Notes: generated from the sequence alone by a model not told the origin. A DNA stretch of 64,000 nt from Rebecca billardiae RCC1528 (GCA_965240325.2 OZ251250.1:124001-188000), one strand, 5' to 3'. Shown: positions 2,238-20,816, counted from the first letter of the stretch. Translations and numbers: made by a program.

Positions 2238-4356
2238 ATGGCGGCGGCCGCCGCGCGTGTGGCGCGCGACGTGCCGGCGGCGTGGTCGCGCTGGGTGCTG
2301 CCGTCGCCGTACGGCGCGGGCGGCCGCGTGGAGGGCTTCGTCGCGCCCGGCTGGGACCGCGTGCGCGCCGCGTTCGAGGCCAACTTCGCCGCCGGCCAGG
2401 AGCTCGGCGCGCAGCTGACGATCCGGCGGCGCGGCCGCGTCGTCGTCGACCTCTCAGGCGCCTCGGCCTCGGCGCGCGCGCCGGCGGGGTACGGCGCGTC
2501 GACGATGCAGTGCGTGTACTCGACGGGCAAGAACCTCGAGGCCGTCGCCGTCGCCATGCTCGTCGACCGCGGCCTCCTCGACTACGGCGAGAAGGTGGCG
2601 CGCTATTGGCCGGAGTTTGGCGCCGCGGGTAAATCCGGAGTAACGGTCGCCGACCTGATGCGGCACGAGGGCGGCGTGCCGATCCTCGCGCAGGCGGGGC
2701 ACGAGCACGACCGCGCGCGCGACCGCAAGCTCACGCCCGACGACGTGCGCGCCGTCGAGCCCATGGAGGCGATGATTGCGGCCGCCGCTCGGATGCCGCC
2801 GCCGCCGCCGCCGGCCGCGGGCGGCGCGGGCGCTGAGGGCGCGTACAACCCGCGGTGCTACCACATGCTCACGCGCGGCTTCGCCGTGAGCGCGCTGCTC
2901 CGCCGCGTCGACCCCGCCGGCCGCTCCCTCGGCCGCTTCGTCGCCGACGAGATTGCATCTCCCCTCGGCCGCGCGTGCGACGGCGGCTCCGAGGTGCGCG
3001 CGAGATTGCATCTCCCCTCGGGTAGGGTTGGGGTTAGGGTTGGCGCGGCGCGAGATTGCATCTCCCCTCGGCGCGGCGCGGCGCAGGGTGGCGCCGGCTG
3101 GCGGGCTCGCTCGCCTGCGCGCGCGCGGCGTGCGCGCCCGCCACACCTCGCGGCAGCGCTCGCTGCGCCGTTGGACGGATGGCCTGCCCTAACCCTAACC
3201 CTAACCCTAACCACCATTGGACTGGCCTGTACCGCACCGCACCGCACCGCACCGCACCGCACCCTGACTGATACGCACCCAGCCGCCTTGGCTCCCGGAC
3301 TCCTGGCCTCGCACCGCACCGCGCCGCTCCGGCTGCCGCTGCTGCCGCGCACGCCCCTGCCCGCGACCCTCACCCTCGCCCGAACATACGACACGCGACA
3401 CGCTACGCGCTACACCGCACCCCGCCCGACCACGCCACCGCGCGCCCGCGCGGTGCCGGCCGCACGGCACGCGCCGCGCGCGCGTTCCCTCGCCCGCGCC
3501 CGCCGCGGCGCACGCGCGCTGCCGCAGCTGCGCTGCCGCATGCAGCCTGATCCCGACCGCGCCGCGCGCCGCCCCTCCTCCCCCGCCGCCACCCCGCCTC
3601 CGCACAGCGCGCGCGCGTGCACAGCTGCGCTGCGGCATCCCAACCGCCGAGCAGCGAGATTGCAATCTCGCGCCGCTGCGGCAGCCGAGCCTTCTCTACG
3701 CCGGCGGTTGCATCCTGCTGCCCGCGCTCCTCGGCCTCGGGTGTCCGGTGCTCTCCGCCACCATCCGGACTTTCCGCAGCTCCACCTCCATCCTCACCTC
3801 CGTGCCGGTCACCTGGTTCGACCCCAAGCTGCCTCGGCCCTCGTTCAACAACACGCCGGAGGGGCGCGCGCTCGAGATCCCGAGCGCGGGCGTGTACGCG
3901 AGCGCGCGCGGCCTCGCGGCGCTGCACGCGACGATGGCGTCGGGCGGCCTCGTGCCCGACGACCGCGCCGACGACGCCGGGGGTGGCGGCGGCGGTGGCC
4001 GCGCGGCCGAGCCCCGCGCGCGGCTGCTCTCCGCCGAGGCGGTGGCGGAGGCGCTGGCCGAGCCGGTCGACCGGCCGGACACCGGACTCGAGGGCAACGC
4101 GTGGGCGATGACGCGCGGCGGCTTTGCGCGGCTCGACACCCTGCGCGGCCTCGCCTTCCACCCGGACGACCCGGGCGCCTACGCCGGACTGGTGGGCTGG
4201 GGCGGCTGGGGCGGCTCGATCGGCGCGTGGGACCCAGATCGCGATCTCGCGCTCGCGTACGTGCCGAGCGGGATGGGGCCGTACCTGATCGGCGGGCCGC
4301 GCTCGCGCGCCATCCTGCACGAGGTGCAGCGCGCGCTCGCGGAGACGGGCGGCTGA
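2238..4356 (+). CDS. Beta-lactamase-family (class C/PF00144-like) serine hydrolase; exons 2238-2993 and 3625-4356 (~495 aa)
   Basis: SxxK motif (YSTGK), LLDYGEKVARYWPEF, LMRHEGG, EIASPLG, GWGGWGGS..WDPDRDLALAY. A GT..AG intron at 2994-3624 joins the two ORFs in phase 0. Confidence 0.88.
3188..3211 (+). repeat. Interstitial telomere-like (CCCTAA)4 in an intron
   Basis: ccctaaccctaaccctaaccctaa. A G-strand version (ggtagggttggggttagggtt) lies at 3021-3041 in the same intron. Confidence 0.8.
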
Positions 4357-11890: not shown

Positions 11891-12529
11891 GCCGCCGCCG
11901 CCGGGCGCGCGGCGGTGGCGGCGGCGCCGGCCGGGCCGGCGGGCCGGGCGCCGAGCGCCGCGCCTGCCACTTGCTTCTGGTGGCCCGAGGCGAAGCCTGG
12001 GAGCACGTCGTCGATCTCGTGCAGCGCGAGGGTCGTGTGCGCGCCGCGCCCCGGCTGCGCCACGCTCAGCTCCTGCGCCGCGCCGTCCAGCCTCAGCATG
12101 GCCGCCGGCATCGCGCCTGGCTCGGCCGCGGCCGCGGGCGCGCGCGCCGAGCGCGCGCCGAGCGCCTGCTGGTACACGGGGAAGAAGGACGGGCGGGAGG
12201 AGTCTGCGCGCGTGCGCGCGCGCGCGTGCGGCACGCACGCACGCCGGGGCGCCCTGTGATCAGCCGCTCGATCGCGCGCGCGGCCGCGCGGGGGGTCGGC
12301 GGCGGCGGCGGCGCAAGAACGCACCGACGTCAAAGCGCAGCCCGGCGCCGCAGTGGGCGCACGACATGGCGAAGGCGAGCGGGCAGGCCGGGCACTTGAC
12401 GAAGGAGGCGCACTGGGGGCAGCGCACCACGCGCGCCGTGCGGTTGCGCTCCATCGGGAACGTGAGCACGCGCGAGACGCACGGCAGCAGCTCGGCGTCA
12501 TGGCGCCCAGCCGCGGCGGCCGACGCCAT
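9850..12529 (-). CDS. Cys-rich Zn-ribbon plus tandem PH-like domain protein (3+ exons)
   Basis: Exon 1 (12529-12325) has CPQC..CPAC..CAHC. Exon 2 from 12203 has LALHEIDDV..LLLFRA..AVSALE and LQGRLL..LWHDRLLVL..LHIF. The last exon has LHQLAAPDLAGKRRWMRAL, typical of a PH C-terminal helix. Confidence 0.6.
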
Positions 12530-12773
12530 GGCCGATCGAGCGCGCCGACGCGCGACTTGCCGACTGCCGCACTGTTGTCTGTTTGTGCGCAAGCAAATTG
12601 TTTTTCGGCTGATGACGTTTTCGTCGCGCCTTTTTCTTTTCGCGGCGACGATGATTTTGAAAGGGGGGCGCGCCCCGACTCTGCTCTGCAGTGCAGCTGG
12701 CGGCCAGCGCGGGCGGCGGCGGCCATCAGTGCAGTGCAGGGCGCACGGGGGCTGGCCGCGGCGCACGGCGCGC
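12530..12773. promoter_or_regulatory. Short divergent (bidirectional) intergenic promoter region
   Basis: 244 bp, with T-rich tracts, between the inferred ATGs at 12529(-) and 12774(+). Confidence 0.5.
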
Positions 12774-15164
12774 ATGACGCCCGGCCCGGCGGAGTACGCC
12801 GGCCCGGCCGTCTTCGCCCTCGAGCTCGCGCTCTACGGCGCGCTCCTCGTCGTCTGCGTCGCGTCCGGCCGCCGTTTCCTGGAACCTTCCGCGCCGTGGG
12901 TGGAGCATGGCTGCCTCACGCGCAAGCTCTTCCACGTGCTGCTCGTGGCGTTCGCGGCGACGCGCGCGGGGTGGGCGCTGCTCGAGCTCGCGCTCACCGC
13001 CCTCCTCGGCGCCGACGCCTCGTGCGTCCGCCTCGCCAACCGCCGGCTCGCGCCGCGCCGACCCGCATGCATCGTCGTCGACTCGGTCGCCGTCTGTCTG
13101 TTCGACACGACGTTTTTGCTCGTGCGCGCCGCGCACCGCCGCGCACCGCCGCGCGTGCGTGCGTGCGTGCGTGCGGCCCCGTCCGCCCGTCTGCCCGCCC
13201 GTGCGTGCGCGCGGCGTGGGGTGCTACGCCGCGCACCGCCGCGCGCGTGCGCGTGCGTGCGCCTCTGTGCGTGCGTGCGTGCGTGCGTGCGGCGTGGGGT
13301 GCCGCGCCGCGCACCGCCGCCGCGCCGCCGCGCCGCGCTCGCCTGCCCTACCCTCACCCTCGCCCTACCCCCCACGCGCCCACGGCACCCGGCGCCCGCC
13401 CGCAGGTGAGCGCGCAGCTCGCGGACGTGCTCGCGCGAGGCTGGAAGTCCAGCCAGCGGCTTTGGTGCGCGCTGCGCGCCGCCGTCGGCGTGCTGTGGGT
13501 GTATTTGGCGTCGAGCGTGCTCGTGGCCGTGCTGGCGGAGCTCGGCGCGGCGGGCGCGGCGGCGCGCGGGTGCGGCGGCGGCGGCGCGCGCGCGGGGCAA
13601 GGGGGCGGCGCGGCGCGGCGCGCGGGTGCGGCGGCGGGCGCCGCGGGCGGCGGCGGGGGGCAGCAGCAGCAGCACGGCGGCGGCGGCGCACTCGGCGGCG
13701 GCGGCACGCCGGCCGCCGCGGCGGCGGCGGCGGCGGCGGGCGCGCACGGCGCCGCCGGCGCCGCCGCCAACGTGGCCGCCCTCGAGGCGGGCGCGCGCGC
13801 GGTCGCTGCCGACTATTACGCGGGCGGTTTCGTCGTACTTGGCGGCTACTCACTTTTACTCGCGCTGTGCGTTCTCTGGCTCGTGCTCGCGCTCTCGCTG
13901 CTGGGCGTGGGCGGGCTGCGCGCGCTGCGCCGCGGCGGCGGCGCCGTCGGCGGCGGCGGCGGCGGCGGCGGCGGCGCGCGCTGGGCGCGCGCGCAGCAGC
14001 AGCAGCAGCAGCTGCCCGCCGCGCGCGCGTCGGCGCTGCGCGTGCGCGCGCACGCGCTGCTGCTGAGCGCGCTCTGTGCCCTCGGCTTTGCGCTGCGCTT
14101 CGCGCTCTTCCTGCGCGCCTTTGAGCTCGCGCGCGCGCACGGCCGCGGCGGCGGCGGTGGCGGCGGCGGCGCGGCCGGGGTGTCGCCGGCGGCGGGCGCG
14201 GCGGGGTCGGACGCGCTCGCGCCGTCCGCGCTCGCGTGGCGGCTGTCCGCGTACTGGCTCCCCGAGCTGCTGCCGTGCGCGTGCCTGCTCACGGCGGAGC
14301 ACTTCCTGAACTCGCTCAAGATCGGCGTCTCGCGCCACCCGGACTTCTCGCTGGCGCCGGTCGCGCGCGTGCGCGCGCGCCGGCGCGCGGCGCGCGCAGG
14401 GCTCGAGCTGACGCGAGCGGCGGTGGGCGGCGGCGGCGCGTTCGGCGGCGGCGGCGCGGCGCCCGAGGGCGCAGGCGGAAGGCTGCCGGGTGGCGGCGCC
14501 GAGGGCGGCGGCGGCTCGGCCGGCCGCGAGCGCGCGCCGGCGCGCGCGGCCGGCGCGCGCGGCGCGGCCGCGGCGGCGGGCGCGAGATTGCAATCTCGCG
14601 CGGCGGCGGCGGGCGCGAGATTCCGCGAGATCGCGGCGGCGAGCGCGGCGCGCGCGGCGGTGGCGGTGGCGGGCGCGCTGGGCACGCCGCCGCCGCGCGC
14701 GCTGCTCCACGCGCACGCACGCCGCGCCGCGGCGGCCGCAGCCGCCGCGCCGACGCCCGCCGCCGCGGCGCGCGGCGGCGCGGACGGCGCGCGCGGACGC
14801 ACCGTCGCCGCGTGCGCGGCTTGCGCGCCGCCCGCGCTGCCCGCCGCCTCGCCCTCCGCCGCCGAGCTGATGGCGGCGGGCGCGGCGCGCGAGGCGCTAC
14901 GAGAGCCTCTGCTGCCGCCTGTCGGCATGGCTGCCGCCGGCGGTGGCGGTGGCGGTGGCGGGCGGCACTGCGGCGGCGGCGGCGAAGGCGGCGGCGGCGA
15001 TGGCGGCGGGCGCGGTGGCGATGGCGCGCCCCTTGCCGCCATGGGCCCAGCGGCAGACCTCGAGAGCGGCGGCTGGTGCGCCGGCAGCGGCCGCGCGGCC
15101 GAGGCACGCGCGCGCCATGCGCCACGCGCCGCCGCGCCGCCGCCGCGCGGCGCGTGGCTCGGCC

Positions 15165-15198
<34 letters not shown>

Positions 15199-15323
15199 GC
15201 GGCTGCTGTCGCTGTTCGCAACCGGCGCCGGCGCGGCGTGGGGCGCGGCGGCCGCGCTGGGCGCGGCGGCCGCGCACGCGGTGTGCTGTGCGCGCCGCCG
15301 CAGCCCACGCCACCTTCCGGTCC

Positions 15324-15354
<31 letters not shown>

Positions 15355-18300
15355 TCGCTCTGATGGAGCGCTGGCAGGGCCGCACCACGGCGGCGGCTCG
15401 GCGGCGCTTGGCGGGCGTGGCGGCTGCGGCTGCAGCGCGGCGCGCTCGGCGGACGCCCTCCTCGCGCCGGGCGCGCGCGCCGTGCCGCCCGCCGCGGACG
15501 ACGAGGACGCGGCCGCCGCCGCCGTCGGCCTGCCGAGCGGCGCGCTGCGCCGGCCGAACGCGCGCTTCGTCGCGAGCTATGTCGTGCGCGCGAGATTGCA
15601 ATCTCGGGGTGGCGCGGCCGCGGCGGCGCGGCGCGCGGCGGCGAGCGCGGCCGCGCTCGACGCGTACTACCCCGGATACTCCGGATACTCGGGATACTCC
15701 GGATCGCCGCCGCCCTCGGGCGGCGGCTCGCCGGTGCGCCGGCCGCGCACCCTGCCAACCACGCTGCCGGTCGTGGCCGGCCGAGATTGCAATCTCGCGG
15801 CCGCGGCCGCCGACGGCGGCAGCGGCGACGACTCGGCCGGCGGGGGCGGCAGCGCCGGCGGCGCTCGGCGGCGCAGCGGCAGCCCGGCCGCCGCGCCGGC
15901 CCCCACGCCCGGCACGCCCCACCCCACCCACGGCCCGCACAGTACCCACGGTACCCGCATGACCCACATTACCCGCACGCTGTATGTGCGCGAGCTCCTG
16001 CTCGAGGGCCCGCTCTCGTTCGCCGTGCCCGCGGGCTGGCTGCTCGCGATCGTCGGCGAGAGGCACCGGCCGGTGGCGGCGCTGGCGGCGTCGCTGGGCG
16101 CGGCCGAGGGCGGCGCGGGCGGCGGCGGGCAGCCGGGCGGGTCGCAGGCGCACGGTGGCGCGGCGCGCGGGGCGGCGGCGCTGGCAGCGGTTGGCGGCGG
16201 CGGCGGCGGCGGCGGCCCGCTGGCGCGGCTGCTCCGACGCTGGGCGCGGCGCGGCAGCGCCGTCGGCGGCGGCGCCGGCACCAACACGGCTGCCGCCGGC
16301 GGCGCCTCGCCCGGACCACCCACCCGGACCGCGCTAATGGCGGCACTCCTCGGCGCGCTCCAGGACGAGCGCCGCCGCACGGGCGCCGAGTGGACGCGCG
16401 CGCAGCTGCTCAAGCGCCACGACTATCTGACCGCGCTGGTGCGCCAGCTCGAGCTGCTGGACGGCTACTACTACCCCGGGTATTCGGGGTATTCGGGGTA
16501 TTCGGGGTATTCGGGGTACGCGGCCGGGCTGGGCGAGGGCAGGCTCTGGTTCAAGCCGTCGACGCGGCGGCGCGACGCGGCGCTGAGCTGCGTGCCGTGC
16601 AACTTGCACGTGCAGTACATGCAGGTCTGGGCCGGGCCGCCCGCCTCCGCCCCCGGCGGCGGCGACGGCGGCGGGTGCGCGGCGGCGCTCGGGCCCGCGC
16701 GGCCCGCGGCGCGCGGCGGCGGCACGCGCGGCGCGGTGCACGTTTGCGTGACGGTGGGCGCGCCGGCCGCGCACCCGCTCGGCTTTGCGCGCGGCGGCGT
16801 CGCGCACTTGGACGAGAGGATCGGCGCGACGGCGCGCGAGCTCGAGCGCTGCCGGCGCGAGCTGGCCGCGCACAGCGTGCACGCGCGCGCTGGCGGCGGC
16901 GGCGGCTCGGCCGAGCCGCCGCCGCCTCCGCACGTGAGCGACGACGCCGCGCACGCGGGAGTCCTCTACCCTAACCCTAGCCCTAACCCTAGCCCTAGCC
17001 CTAACCCTAGCCCTAACCTCTGGACGGGCGGCTCCGTGCTGCTGGATGGCTCCGGCTCGCCGTGGGGCGGCGGCGCGCCCGACCCGACCCTGGTCCTCCC
17101 CCTGCCACCGCTCTCTCCGCCGCGCGCCGGCGGCGGCGCGCACGCGCCCGTCCGAGATTGCAATCTCGACGGCGCGCCTCGGGGCGCCGGCGCCTGCCCG
17201 CACCCGCGCCCGGCACAGCCGCCGCCGCCGCTGTGGGGCGGTGCGGGCGGCGGCGGCACGCCGCCGCGGCCGCAGCCGAGCCCGCTGCGCGCCGCGGCGG
17301 AGCGCGCGCTGCCGCCGCGCTGGGTGGCGGCGCTGGGCGGCGGCGGCGGCGCGTCCGGCGCCCCGGGCGGCGCGGCCGGCGGCGGCGGCGCGGCCCTCGG
17401 CGATTCGTCACCCAGCATGGCCGCCCCGGACTCGGGCGGTTTCAGCATGGCCGCCGAGCACTGCGACTACCTCGCGAAGAAGCTGTGCGAGCTGCGCTTC
17501 GAGCGGATGCAGCGGCTGGACTGCTGCACGGCGCAGGCGCTCGCCATCGTCGGTACTGCGGTGGGCGCGCAACTCCTCGCGCTGCTGCACGATGGAGGCG
17601 GCTGCGCGGACGCGGACGCGGCGGAGGCGGAGGCGGCGGAGGCGGAGGCGGAGGCGGAGGCGGCGGAGGCGGAGGCGGCGGCGGCGGACGCGCGGAAGGG
17701 GGGCGGCGGCGCGGCGAAGGCGCCGCCGCCGGTGCCTCCGCCCGAGCCCGGCGGCGGCGGCGGCGCGGCGCGCGCCACGCCCGCGCCACCGCGCGGCTTG
17801 TGTGGCGGTGGCACCGGCGGCGGCGCCGCCGCCGCGCCGCCGCCACCGCCGCCCGCCGCCGCCGCCGAGCCCGTCTCGCCGCCCGCGCGCCTCTCCGCGC
17901 GCTCCGCCGCCATCCTGCGGCAGTGGTCCCGCCACGGCATCCTCCTCGGCTGGGAGTCGCTCCTCTCCGCCGCGGGGGACGAGGCGGGCATGCTCGCCGA
18001 TTTCGTTGGCACAGTCCGAGCCCTCCGGGCGCAGGGGCTGGCGGTGCGGCTGGCGCGCTCGCGCGCGGGGTGCGCGGCGGCGGGCGGCGGCGGGGAGGGC
18101 GACGGCGGGGGCGGCGGCGCGGAGGCGGGCGAGGTCGGGTCGGCGGGCCCGCCCGCGCCGCGCCCGCGGCCGCGCGCGCCACCAGCCCGCGGCAGCCCTG
18201 AGCAGCCGCCAGACACCGCCAGAGCTGCGAGATTGCAATCTCAGCCGCCAGACGCCGTCCGAGCTGCGAGATTGCAATCTCGCGGACGCGCCGCTGCCGC

Positions 18301-18864
18301 CCTCCCGCCGCTCGCGTGGGGTCGACGGTCGGAGGTGGGCGAGCGCGCGTGGCTGCTCGCGCGCGCCGGCGCGTGGGGGGACCCGCTCGCGTCCGTCCTC
18401 GCGCTGCCCGACGTCAGCGTGCACACGGAGTGCTGGGGCGGCGGGCGGCGCGGCGGCGCCGCGCCAACGGCGGCCGACGCGGACAATGTGCCCACCGCCG
18501 ACGACGACGGCGGCGGCGGCGGCAGCGGCGCGGCGCGGGTGCGGCGGCGCGGCGGCGGTGGCCCCGGCGGCCAGCGCACGGCTCGCTCGCCGGCCACGCC
18601 AGCCGCGTCGCCAGAGGCGGCAGATTCAGCAGCAGCGGCCGCCGCCGCAGCCGCCGCCCATCCCGCGGCGGCTGGCGCAGACGCGGGCGCGGCGGACGCG
18701 GCGGACGCGGCTGGCTTGGACGGCGGCAGCGGCGCGTCCGCGAGATTGCAATCTCGCAGCTCGGACGGCGGCGCCGAGTCCGACGCAGACGCCGCCGCGT
18801 GCGATGGCGAGCGCGGCGGCGACGGCGGCGACGGCGGCGTCGAAGGCAGCAGCGCCGAATCCAG

Positions 18865-18934
<70 letters not shown>

Positions 18935-20816
18935 TCGCGTCGGCTGGTGTTGACGCTGGAGCTTCCGCCGCCGCTGTGGCGGCTGCTGCCGCCCGAGCTG
19001 CGAGATTGCAATCTCGCGGACGCGCCGCTGCTGCCGTGTGTGCTCGCACTCTTCACGCAGGTGCGCGCGCGCCGCGCCGGCGGCAGTGCCGGAGGCCCGC
19101 GGCCGGCCCAGTGCGCCGCGGCGCGCGGCTCTTGCGCGCCCAAGCGCCGACGCGCGAGATTGCAATCTCGCGGCGGCGCCGGGCGCGGCGGTGCGCCCCC
19201 CGCTGCGCCGGCAGGCGCGCGCCCCACTCAAGCCTGACTGACTCGGCATGGCCGCCACTGCCCTGCCGCGCCGGCTCCGCTCGCCCTTTTCCCCTTTTCT
19301 TTTTTCCTGATTTCCTTTTCTCTTCTTTTCTGTGTTTCTCTTTCTTTTCCTTTTCTCTTCTTTTCTGTGTTTCTGTGTTTCTCTCTCTTGTGCCGGGGGC
19401 GCGCAGGGCATCAACCTCACGCAGCAGGTCGCGCAGGCCGTCGGCTCCGCGCAGGCGCGGCTGCAGGAGCGCACCAACGCCGACAGCTACTCACTTTTAC
19501 TCGCCTATGCGCACCGCGTCCTTGGCGCGGAGGCGGCGGCGGCGGGTGTGCCCCTGGCGCGCTCGCCGCACGCTCAGCCGCCGGGCGGTGGCGCGCACGC
19601 GGCGGCGGCGGCGGCGCAGCAGCACGGCGCAGCGCCCGGCACGCCGGGCGGTGGCGTGCCCGGCCTCGGCGGCGCCGGCGGCAGCCGCAGCAGCCTCGGC
19701 AGCGCGCCGCTGCCGCCGCAGCCGCAGCAGCAGCAGCCGCAGCAGGCGGCCGCGTCGCCGCGCGGCGGCGCGCGCTGCTCACCGCGCGGCGCGCCGAGCC
19801 CCGGACTGGCGCCCGGACCGTCACTCGGCTGGGGCGGCGCGGGCGCGCGCACGCCGGGCGGCACGGCTGGCGGTGCGGGCGCGCTGGGCACGCCCCTCGC
19901 CGCGCTCAGCCGCGCGGCCTCCTCCCTCTCCGACTATGGCGCCGGCGCCGGCCCGGCGCACGGCGGCGGGAGCGGCGGCGGCGGCGCGGCGGCGCCTGAC
20001 TCGACGGCCGCCGCCTCGGGCTCGCCCTCGCCCGCGGGGTCGATGACGGCGCCGGCGGCGCTGCTGAGCGTGGCGGCGGCGGCGGCGGCCGCGCACTACT
20101 CCCTCGCCGTCGTGCTGGACGACGGCCGCCACCACACGCTGAGCAAGCTGCAGCGGCTGCACCGTGCGCGCCCGCGCCGCCGCGCGCCCGCCGCCGCGCG
20201 CCCGCGCCGCGCGCCCGCGCCGCGCGCCGCGCCGCGCGCCGCGCCGCGGCTGACGCCAGCCCCCACACACCCCCCGTGCCCCCGCGCCCGCGCCGACGTG
20301 CGCGCAACTCTTCGCGCTGCCCTGCTTCCCGGGCCTCCTTCGTCTTCTGTGCTCATCTCCCTCGGCCGCAAATTCGGCATCGTCAATTGCGTCTCATATT
20401 TCGTTATTATTTATTATTCCCTTTTCTTCTTTTCTTTTCTTTCGTCCCCTCGCGGCGCCGGCTGCGCAGACCTGGTGCACTGCGCGCGCGGCGAGCCGTC
20501 CGTCGACCTGCTGCAGCTGGCGGAGGACGTGGTGCGCCGGCTGCACGGCGTGCGCGTGACGTCGTGCAAGTCGGGCAAGGACCGCACCGCCATGTCCGTC
20601 ACCGCCGAGCAGGCCCACCTCCTTGCCCACGAGCACGGCGTCAGCGCCGCAGACGCAGAGGCGCTCGCCGGCCGCATGCGCCGCGAGGGCGTGCGGCTCG
20701 AGAACGCCAAAAAGAACACGGGGCGCTCGCTGTACGCGTTCTCGCGGCTGCAGCGGCGCTGGCTGCCGCAGCAGTACGCGCCGCCCGAGGGCACGTACGC
20801 GCGCGGCCGCACGTAG
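12774..20816 (+). CDS. 7TM (TOM1/GPR137-like) domain fused to inositol polyphosphate 4-phosphatase (INPP4-type); exons 12774-13121, 13406-19060, 19407-20163, 20470-20816 (~2,368 aa)
   Basis: N-terminal hydrophobic helices with TRKLFHVLL..TRAGW and YWLPELLP. INPP4 blocks FKPS..VPCNLHVQ, VTVGAPAAH.LGF..GG, ILRQW..GILLGWESLLS..GDEAGML, LFTQ|GIN and catalytic CKSGKDRTAMSVT (20565-). All three inferred introns are GT..AG and keep the frame. Confidence 0.85.
16969..17018 (+). repeat. Telomere-like CCCTAA/CCCTAG array, in frame in the large exon (PNPSPNPSPSPNPSPN)
   Basis: Seen directly in the sequence. Confidence 0.75.

Follow-up and report, generated by a model that had tools for sequence, protein, structure and literature searches.

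Fusions of G-protein-coupled receptors (GPCRs) to enzymes, known as "bigrams", have been treated as a speciality of oomycetes and are proposed drug targets. In the only survey, published by van den Hoogen et al. in 2018, fusions of the GPCR-INPP type were found in oomycetes and Nannochloropsis only, and the haptophytes surveyed had GPCR-PIPKs only (PMC5784254). Direct signalling from the receptor head to the attached enzyme has been proposed for the oomycete GPCR-bigrams, an idea that is still untested (PMC5784254, PMC6033456). Here we describe a gene of the GPCR-INPP design from the haptophyte Rebecca billardiae RCC1528, located at 12774-20816 on the plus strand of a 64,000-nt stretch of genomic DNA (the window; all coordinates are those of the whole stretch). 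The gene is predicted to join a seven-helix membrane head to an INPP4-type phosphoinositide phosphatase. A first-pass annotation of the same DNA had proposed such a fusion and described GPCR-INPPs as known mainly from oomycetes, in agreement with the 2018 survey (PMC5784254); our literature search found no paper describing a GPCR-INPP in a haptophyte.

Results

The gene model was built from sequence and homology, and every exon was searched separately, not as part of a joined protein. It consists of four exons and about 2,368 codons, provided that exon 2 has no further introns. Judged from its homologues, the fusion of head and phosphatase is real and is kept in at least three other organisms. 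Among about 70 long relatives, 16 have 5-8 hydrophobic helices N-terminal to the phosphatase, and two of those share the head type of the window gene: P0011 (933 amino acids) and P0014 (1,760 amino acids), the latter with a near-identical cluster member, P0152. Each of these three proteins, encoded on unrelated contigs, carries head and phosphatase in a single open reading frame (ORF), and P0011, an intron-less ORF on a Tara Oceans scaffold (L004, 6,112 bp), aligns in strict order with exon 1, the head of exon 2, the INPP4 blocks, exon 3 and exon 4 of the window gene. Because the ORFs of P0011, P0014 and P0152 are single and collinear, the fusion does not depend on how the window gene is spliced. 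A metagenome scan with a two-row alignment added one partial relative, L003, which ends before the phosphatase. Word-seeded protein searches with an INPP4 block, the P0011 head and the head alignment gave no relatives other than P0011 itself, a blank that is limited by the length window and the seeding of these searches and says nothing on absence. Other INPP4 relatives carry C2, PH or FYVE-like heads.

The G+C content of the locus is about 80-82%, and therefore open frames by themselves carry little weight. The longest ORF runs from 12353 to 19237 (+; 2,294 codons, or 2,325 codons for the stop-free run including its upstream part), the second-longest stop-free run across the 64-kb window being 871 codons. 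Between 13406 and 19060 (+) this frame has no stop in 1,885 codons, while the remaining five frames of the same stretch have 6-16 stops; first-order Markov simulation gave a mean expectation of 13.3 stops, for which the Poisson P(0) is 1.7e-6. The G+C content at third codon positions (GC3) is 0.9-0.97 in the coding frame from about 13350 to 18400, in the same frame throughout, and shifts to the frame of exon 1 at about 12750. AT-richer dips are seen only in the 5' flank, at about 12450-12600, in both 3' introns and at the 3' end, and none separates the membrane part from the INPP4 part.

Exon 1 (12774-13121, +) opens with the ATG at 12774 and encodes helices 1-3; it was placed by the GC3 switch, by hydropathy and by alignment of its N-terminus to the starts of P0014 and P0011, and its end aligns with helix 3 of both. 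Intron 1 (13122-13405, +; 284 nt, GT...AG, with a GTGC-repeat and a C-rich tract) changes the frame. The end of exon 1 and the start of exon 2 match one continuous helix 3/loop in P0014 and L003, and we count this junction as validated because homology runs continuously across it. As a side observation, intron 1 consists mostly of (GTGC)n-like repeats between 13140 and 13330, together with two near-identical copies of about 60 bp, and differs in composition from the CT-rich introns 2 and 3.

Exon 2 (+) falls into three parts. The first (13406-14362) encodes the end of helix 3, helices 4-7 and Gly/Ala/Gln-rich loops, and is collinear with residues 106-282 of P0011; the second (14363-15565) is Ala/Gly/Arg-rich and of low complexity, with GC3 of 0.82-0.92 in the coding frame, and forms most of a tether; and the third (15566-19060) encodes the N-terminal and middle INPP4 blocks with low-complexity inserts between them, collinear with P0011 354-699 and with dozens of INPP4 relatives. 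Between helix 7 and the point where INPP4 first matches strongly (15992), the tether is about 540 residues long, against about 70 in P0011. Intron 2 (19061-19406, +; 346 nt) has a GTGCGC donor, a CT tract of about 100 nt and a CAG acceptor, after which exon 3 (19407-20163, +; GC3 0.92-0.98) picks up at the conserved "GIN..QQ" block, encoding the INPP4 block that corresponds to P0011 761-787 and then an Ala/Gly/Pro-rich insert. Intron 3 (20164-20469, +; 306 nt) has a GT donor, an AT/CT-rich tract and a CAG acceptor, and exon 4 (20470-20816, +) encodes the catalytic core, with CKSGKDR at 20565-20585 and the stop codon at 20814-20816. Introns 2 and 3 are thus canonical GT...AG introns with long pyrimidine tracts, and homology carries on across both.

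This model fits the outer coordinates of the first-pass annotation exactly, from the ATG at 12774 to the stop at 20814-20816. The annotation had also placed helices and INPP4 blocks in the one open frame 13406-19060, which is correct for helices 4-7 and the INPP4 blocks, helices 1-3 being encoded by exon 1. The CKSGKDR site, which it had listed with this 5.6-kb frame, lies outside it, in the last exon, two introns downstream. Its statement that the fusion needs no exon joining thus stands for the joint between head and tail, given the single ORFs of the homologues, and fails for the complete enzyme, which does depend on exon joining because CKSGKDR sits two introns beyond the long frame.

Ala/Gly/Arg/Pro-rich inserts at 14363-15565, 16880-17440, 18150-18930 and 19560-20100 accompany a protein about 2.5 times the length of P0011. 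A Y-P-G-(Y-S-G)n repeat is found near 15650 and again near 16470, there within a conserved INPP4 block. Some inserts start with GTGCGC and could be unrecognised in-frame introns.

By homology and by its active-site loop, the tail is a genuine INPP4-type CX5R lipid 4-phosphatase, with activity on phosphatidylinositol 3,4-bisphosphate (PI(3,4)P2) predicted from family membership. In a sequence search of solved structures the last exon matched the IP4P domain of P-Rex2 (E 1.3e-9), and exhaustive HMMER searching with the catalytic exon gave 1,088 relatives, 538 of them at E<=1e-10, so that the proposed search of the C-terminus did return INPP4. In all 150 relatives listed of these 1,088 the match sits at the C-terminal end. 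The best relative (75% identity) is an environmental fragment named inositol polyphosphate-4-phosphatase, and relatives at 49-51% identity are named PI(3,4)P2 4-phosphatase by their sources; hagfish and Ciona proteins are among the relatives bearing one or other of these two names. The loop CKSGKDRT (20565-20588) is an intact CX5R site near the C-terminus, as had been noted; of the 150 relatives listed, 149 have the same loop type, CKS[A/G]KDRT (A in 103, G in 45, and a final S in one).

Upstream of the loop, INPP4 blocks lie in the long frame at 15971-16054, 16406-16876, 17441-17590, 17912-18151 and 18938-19060. Taken together, the upstream blocks (15992-19487) are collinear with P0011 354-787 and with many relatives, in the order of the family. 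The 72-Mb genome holds one copy of the catalytic exon. Pfam found no C2 domain in any exon piece, and the seven-helix head occupies that place; on whole ORFs and trimmed pieces it gave nothing relevant beyond a faint IpgD match at the CX5R loop, Pfam containing no INPP4 catalytic model. A search of PDB sequences with the long middle part returned low-complexity noise alone (a TET2 linker).

Hydropathy places helices 1-3 in exon 1, at 12807-12863, 12927-12992 and 13065-13121 (+), and helices 4-7 in exon 2, at 13478-13534, 13853-13909, 14057-14128 and about 14234-14310 (+), the last bearing a "WLPELLP" motif. Helix 1 begins about 11 residues after the N-terminus, the head has no ectodomain, and the outer loops of the window gene are Gly/Ala low-complexity sequence. 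The N-terminus is predicted to lie outside and the catalytic domain in the cytosol, because lysine plus arginine residues of P0011 number 14 inside against 5 outside by the positive-inside count.

The fold of the head was modelled with AlphaFold on residues 1-300 of P0011. With 5 alignment rows the predicted local distance difference test score (pLDDT) was 52; with 20 rows, comprising the earlier rows, the exon pieces of the window gene and L003, and all other fusion heads including those of oomycete type, the model had a pLDDT of 78, a predicted template modelling score (pTM) of 0.69 and seven long helices. Comparison by VIA-align with 48,161 chains gave Z of 13-16 over 215-250 aligned residues at a root-mean-square deviation of 3.8-5, and the best 50 matches were all seven-helix receptors. 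These were tied across classes A, B, C, D, F and T, among them GPR6, a bitter-taste receptor, Ste2, Frizzled and GABA-B, and extended to AdipoR2, TMEM87A and GPR155. The model thus supports a generic receptor-type seven-helix bundle with no class preferred. The first-pass annotation had made its receptor domain depend on about six or more transmembrane helices or a seven-helix fold; seven are predicted, with a GPCR-like fold match at Z 13-16. The class-A motifs DRY (after helix 3) and NPxxY (helix 7) are absent from the head alignment, which instead has G-[YFW]-[RK]-S-S behind helix 3 and, within helix 7, W-L-P-E-L. The helix-7 motif W-L/I/V-P-E..P and polar positions of helix 3 are conserved across very distant fusion proteins.

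Kinship of the head with the THH1/TOM1/GPR137 proteins, a search that the first-pass annotation had proposed, was suggested by language-model similarity and not by profile HMM. Of the 30 clusters closest to the P0011 head in language-model features, 19 contain PF06454 or GPR137_N (0.91-0.93); with exon 2 of the window gene, THH1/TOM1/GPR137 clusters appear at a weaker 0.87-0.88. PF06454 gave no match on the exon pieces (E<=10), on P0011 (E<=0.1) or in a six-frame search of the genome (E<=1). Because Pfam finds no match and nothing emerged from the Atlas shape search, the affinity of the head to THH1/TOM1/TOM3/GPR137 stays a lead only.

A tree built on the phosphatase region sets every fused form, along with 14 non-membrane forms, opposite the animal-type enzymes, with a Shimodaira-Hasegawa-like approximate likelihood ratio test (SH-aLRT) value of 98. 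P0011 and P0014 form a branch of their own (SH-aLRT 99), outside the oomycete-type clade (SH-aLRT 98). With respect to the proposed phylogeny against the oomycete GPCR-INPPs, the group of the window gene therefore falls on the same side of the split and not inside the oomycete-type clade. A first approximately unbiased (AU) test rejected a single clade of fused forms, a rejection that came from P0035 and P0083, two rows with truncated N-termini nested in fused clades; after their removal the single clade was not rejected (p-AU 0.34). A single old fusion and several fusions are both compatible with these tests.

Several further observations concern the genome and the locus. A six-frame search gave matches to G-alpha (PF00503) at G000:C32:945181-945435 and seven other places, most covering the GTPase core alone (profile positions about 168-262), and one passing the cut-off after in-frame neighbours were added. 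The genome has at least nine loci with a PIP5K domain, and at two of them, L013 (G000:C13:1480000-1486000) and L014 (G000:C24:1029500-1035500), the open frame of the kinase also encodes, further upstream, four hydrophobic helices. These two are probably genes of the GPCR-PIPK type, the kinase counterpart found in other haptophytes by the 2018 survey, and the alga may hold both halves of a proposed kinase/phosphatase pair. The four genes of the scaffold that carries P0011 are separated by about 30-55 bp, the neighbours encoding a DEX1-type beta-propeller protein and a CGL160_C protein, and an origin of the scaffold in a compact picoeukaryote, possibly of the green lineage, is suggested.

The 72-Mb genome contains 170 exact copies of a perfect 16-bp palindrome, CGAGATTGCAATCTCG, whose reversed control has 0. 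Copies lie at window positions 14583, 15591, 15782, 17153, 18228 (1 mismatch), 18267, 18741, 19001 and 19155, the eight exact ones falling in a 4.6-kb part of the gene, where exon 2 has seven and intron 2 has the other; further copies occur at 3655 and 55404 and at loci L006-L009. Translated in the long frame it yields two peptides, ARLQSR and RDCNL, and the copy at 19001 falls within a conserved INPP4 block. Elsewhere the palindrome has no conserved flanks and often recurs in tandem, spaced in frame by 24 or 39 bp, and such tandem copies occur where the codon-position G+C asymmetry is clear. The palindrome may serve as a binding site, mark a hot spot for insertions or be a tiny mobile unit that coding sequence tolerates. 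An adapter remnant was rejected, the flanks being ordinary GC-rich genomic sequence.

Discussion

Our results point to one gene that would produce one chain, in which a long, disordered tether rich in Ala/Gly connects a seven-helix head to an INPP4-type phosphatase in the cytosol. In the reading that we favour, with a probability of roughly 0.6, this polytopic protein of about 2,370 residues serves to position its enzyme at one membrane. The head would stand in for the C2, PH or FYVE-like heads with which its relatives bind membranes and would fix the cell's only INPP4 enzyme permanently at a particular membrane, where the tethered catalytic domain would strip the 4-phosphate from PI(3,4)P2-type lipids in the cytosolic leaflet of that same membrane. 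A membrane-positioning module is the simplest reading of the head because relatives pair the catalytic module with lipid-binding heads. The conserved polar positions of helices 3 and 7 suggest that the head may be more than an anchor, with some part in sensing or regulation.

Several points weigh against this interpretation. Helical bundles can reach Z of about 13-14 by arrangement alone, and the observed 13-16 is scarcely higher. Foldseek on the PDB gave no match at E<=0.001; on the supporting side, 49 of the best 50 of its weak rows are GPCRs, aligned end to end. The Atlas shape search with the head found no significant match, and the fold itself was modelled on the homologue P0011, the window exons having entered as alignment rows. 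Exon 2, with its long tether, could hide in-frame introns, and the gene and the joining of its exons rest on sequence, not on transcripts. Substrate, location and activity are those expected from family membership.

The first-pass annotation had preferred a ligand-gated, G-protein-independent receptor, and we consider the membrane-positioning role at least as likely. A receptor-enzyme of this sort, in which an outside or lumenal ligand would alter the head and so switch the phosphatase directly, without a G protein, is possible, and we hold it with clearly less confidence. It would account for features that an anchor does not need and that distant fusions nonetheless keep, namely the seven-helix fold, the predicted N-out/C-in topology, the helix-7 motif and the polar positions of helix 3, and the same idea has been put forward for the oomycete GPCR-bigrams (PMC5784254, PMC6033456). 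However, the head has no ectodomain, and the outer loops of the window gene are of low complexity. A disordered tether of about 540 residues transmits a conformational change poorly, the DRY and NPxxY motifs of class A are absent from the alignment, and with G-alpha-like matches in the genome independence from G proteins is not implied.

A bolder version joins this idea to the lead on kinship: one ancient fusion, widespread and no peculiarity of oomycetes, made before the split of stramenopile, haptophyte and green picoalga-like lineages, in which a GPR137/THH1-type endolysosomal sensor would directly control the sole PI(3,4)P2 4-phosphatase. We regard this as doubtful. If true, a single protein would connect a signal from the lumen or the outside with 3-phosphoinositide turnover, independently of G proteins.

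Less probable still is a catalytically silent scaffold, whose INPP4-like tail would bind partners or lipids without hydrolysis in the manner of the P-Rex IP4P domain. The closest solved relatives of the tail are indeed the IP4P domains of P-Rex1/2, for which no phosphatase activity is known. However, the window gene retains CKSGKDRT, as do 149 of the 150 relatives listed with their loop of the same type, annotated PI(3,4)P2 4-phosphatases included, and the loop that is degenerate in P-Rex2 is full here. Hardly any weight is left for two adjacent genes sharing an open frame in GC-rich DNA, or for a decaying pseudogene: long frames are common at 80% G+C (runs of 650-870 codons occur elsewhere in the window) and homology does not support the tether of about 540 residues, but 1,885 stop-free codons (P about 2e-6), continuous GC3, the want of an intergenic-like G+C dip, three independent homologues that carry head and tail in one ORF, in one case a mere 70 residues or so apart, and the intact conserved blocks and active site argue against these readings.

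The GPCR-INPP design is now seen in a haptophyte, in a compact marine picoeukaryote (the Tara scaffold), in Cantina and in other uncultured eukaryotes. These fusions have a small head and no ectodomain, and in Rebecca billardiae the fusion is the only INPP4-type enzyme, which offers a simpler, single-copy system for asking whether a seven-helix head regulates a lipid phosphatase directly and raises the question of what role PI(3,4)P2-type signalling has in algae. For expression and structure work P0011, with 933 residues and without the low-complexity inserts, is the practical protein.

Of the known proteins that can be set beside the window gene, THH1/TOM1/TOM3 (PF06454) and GPR137 resemble its head in approximate size, in having seven helices and in lacking an ectodomain, and by language-model features they are its nearest named clusters. 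They differ in that no Pfam match links them to the head. GPR137 is described as having no domains beyond its seven helices (PMC12716839), so that its pairing with a phosphatase tail would be new for the family, should the kinship be real.

On the side of the enzyme, animal INPP4A and INPP4B are homologous to the window gene over the catalytic region and the preceding blocks and have the same type of C-terminal CX5R loop. The animal-type relatives that were checked are soluble, one of the three scanned (P0030) has a C2 head, and they fall across the split with SH-aLRT of 98; in contrast, the window gene has the seven-helix head and large low-complexity inserts. The IP4P domains of P-Rex1 and P-Rex2 (9zq7, 6pcv and others), the closest solved sequence relatives of the catalytic exon, form the C-terminal domain of a Rac exchange factor that has no membrane head, and in P-Rex2 the degeneracy of the loop lies at the aligned position.

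The closest counterparts are the GPCR-INPPs of oomycetes and Nannochloropsis, which have the same layout, one chain that begins with a seven-helix domain and carries an inositol-polyphosphate phosphatase at its C-terminus. A Saprolegnia protein (P0042), with the loop CKSAKDRT, is among the relatives of the catalytic exon. The oomycete-type heads, however, form a separate group of eleven fusion proteins, including Saprolegnia, with no phmmer link to the group of P0011 and P0014, and many have a signal peptide and several hundred residues before helix 1, against about 11 residues in the window gene. Aligned by hhalign, the heads of the two groups meet with 91% probability (E 1e-6) over 37 columns of helix 7 only, and its W-L/I/V-P motif is common to all fusion heads. 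On these comparisons the window gene is a haptophyte representative of the GPCR-INPP design, of a separate lineage and with a smaller, diverged head.

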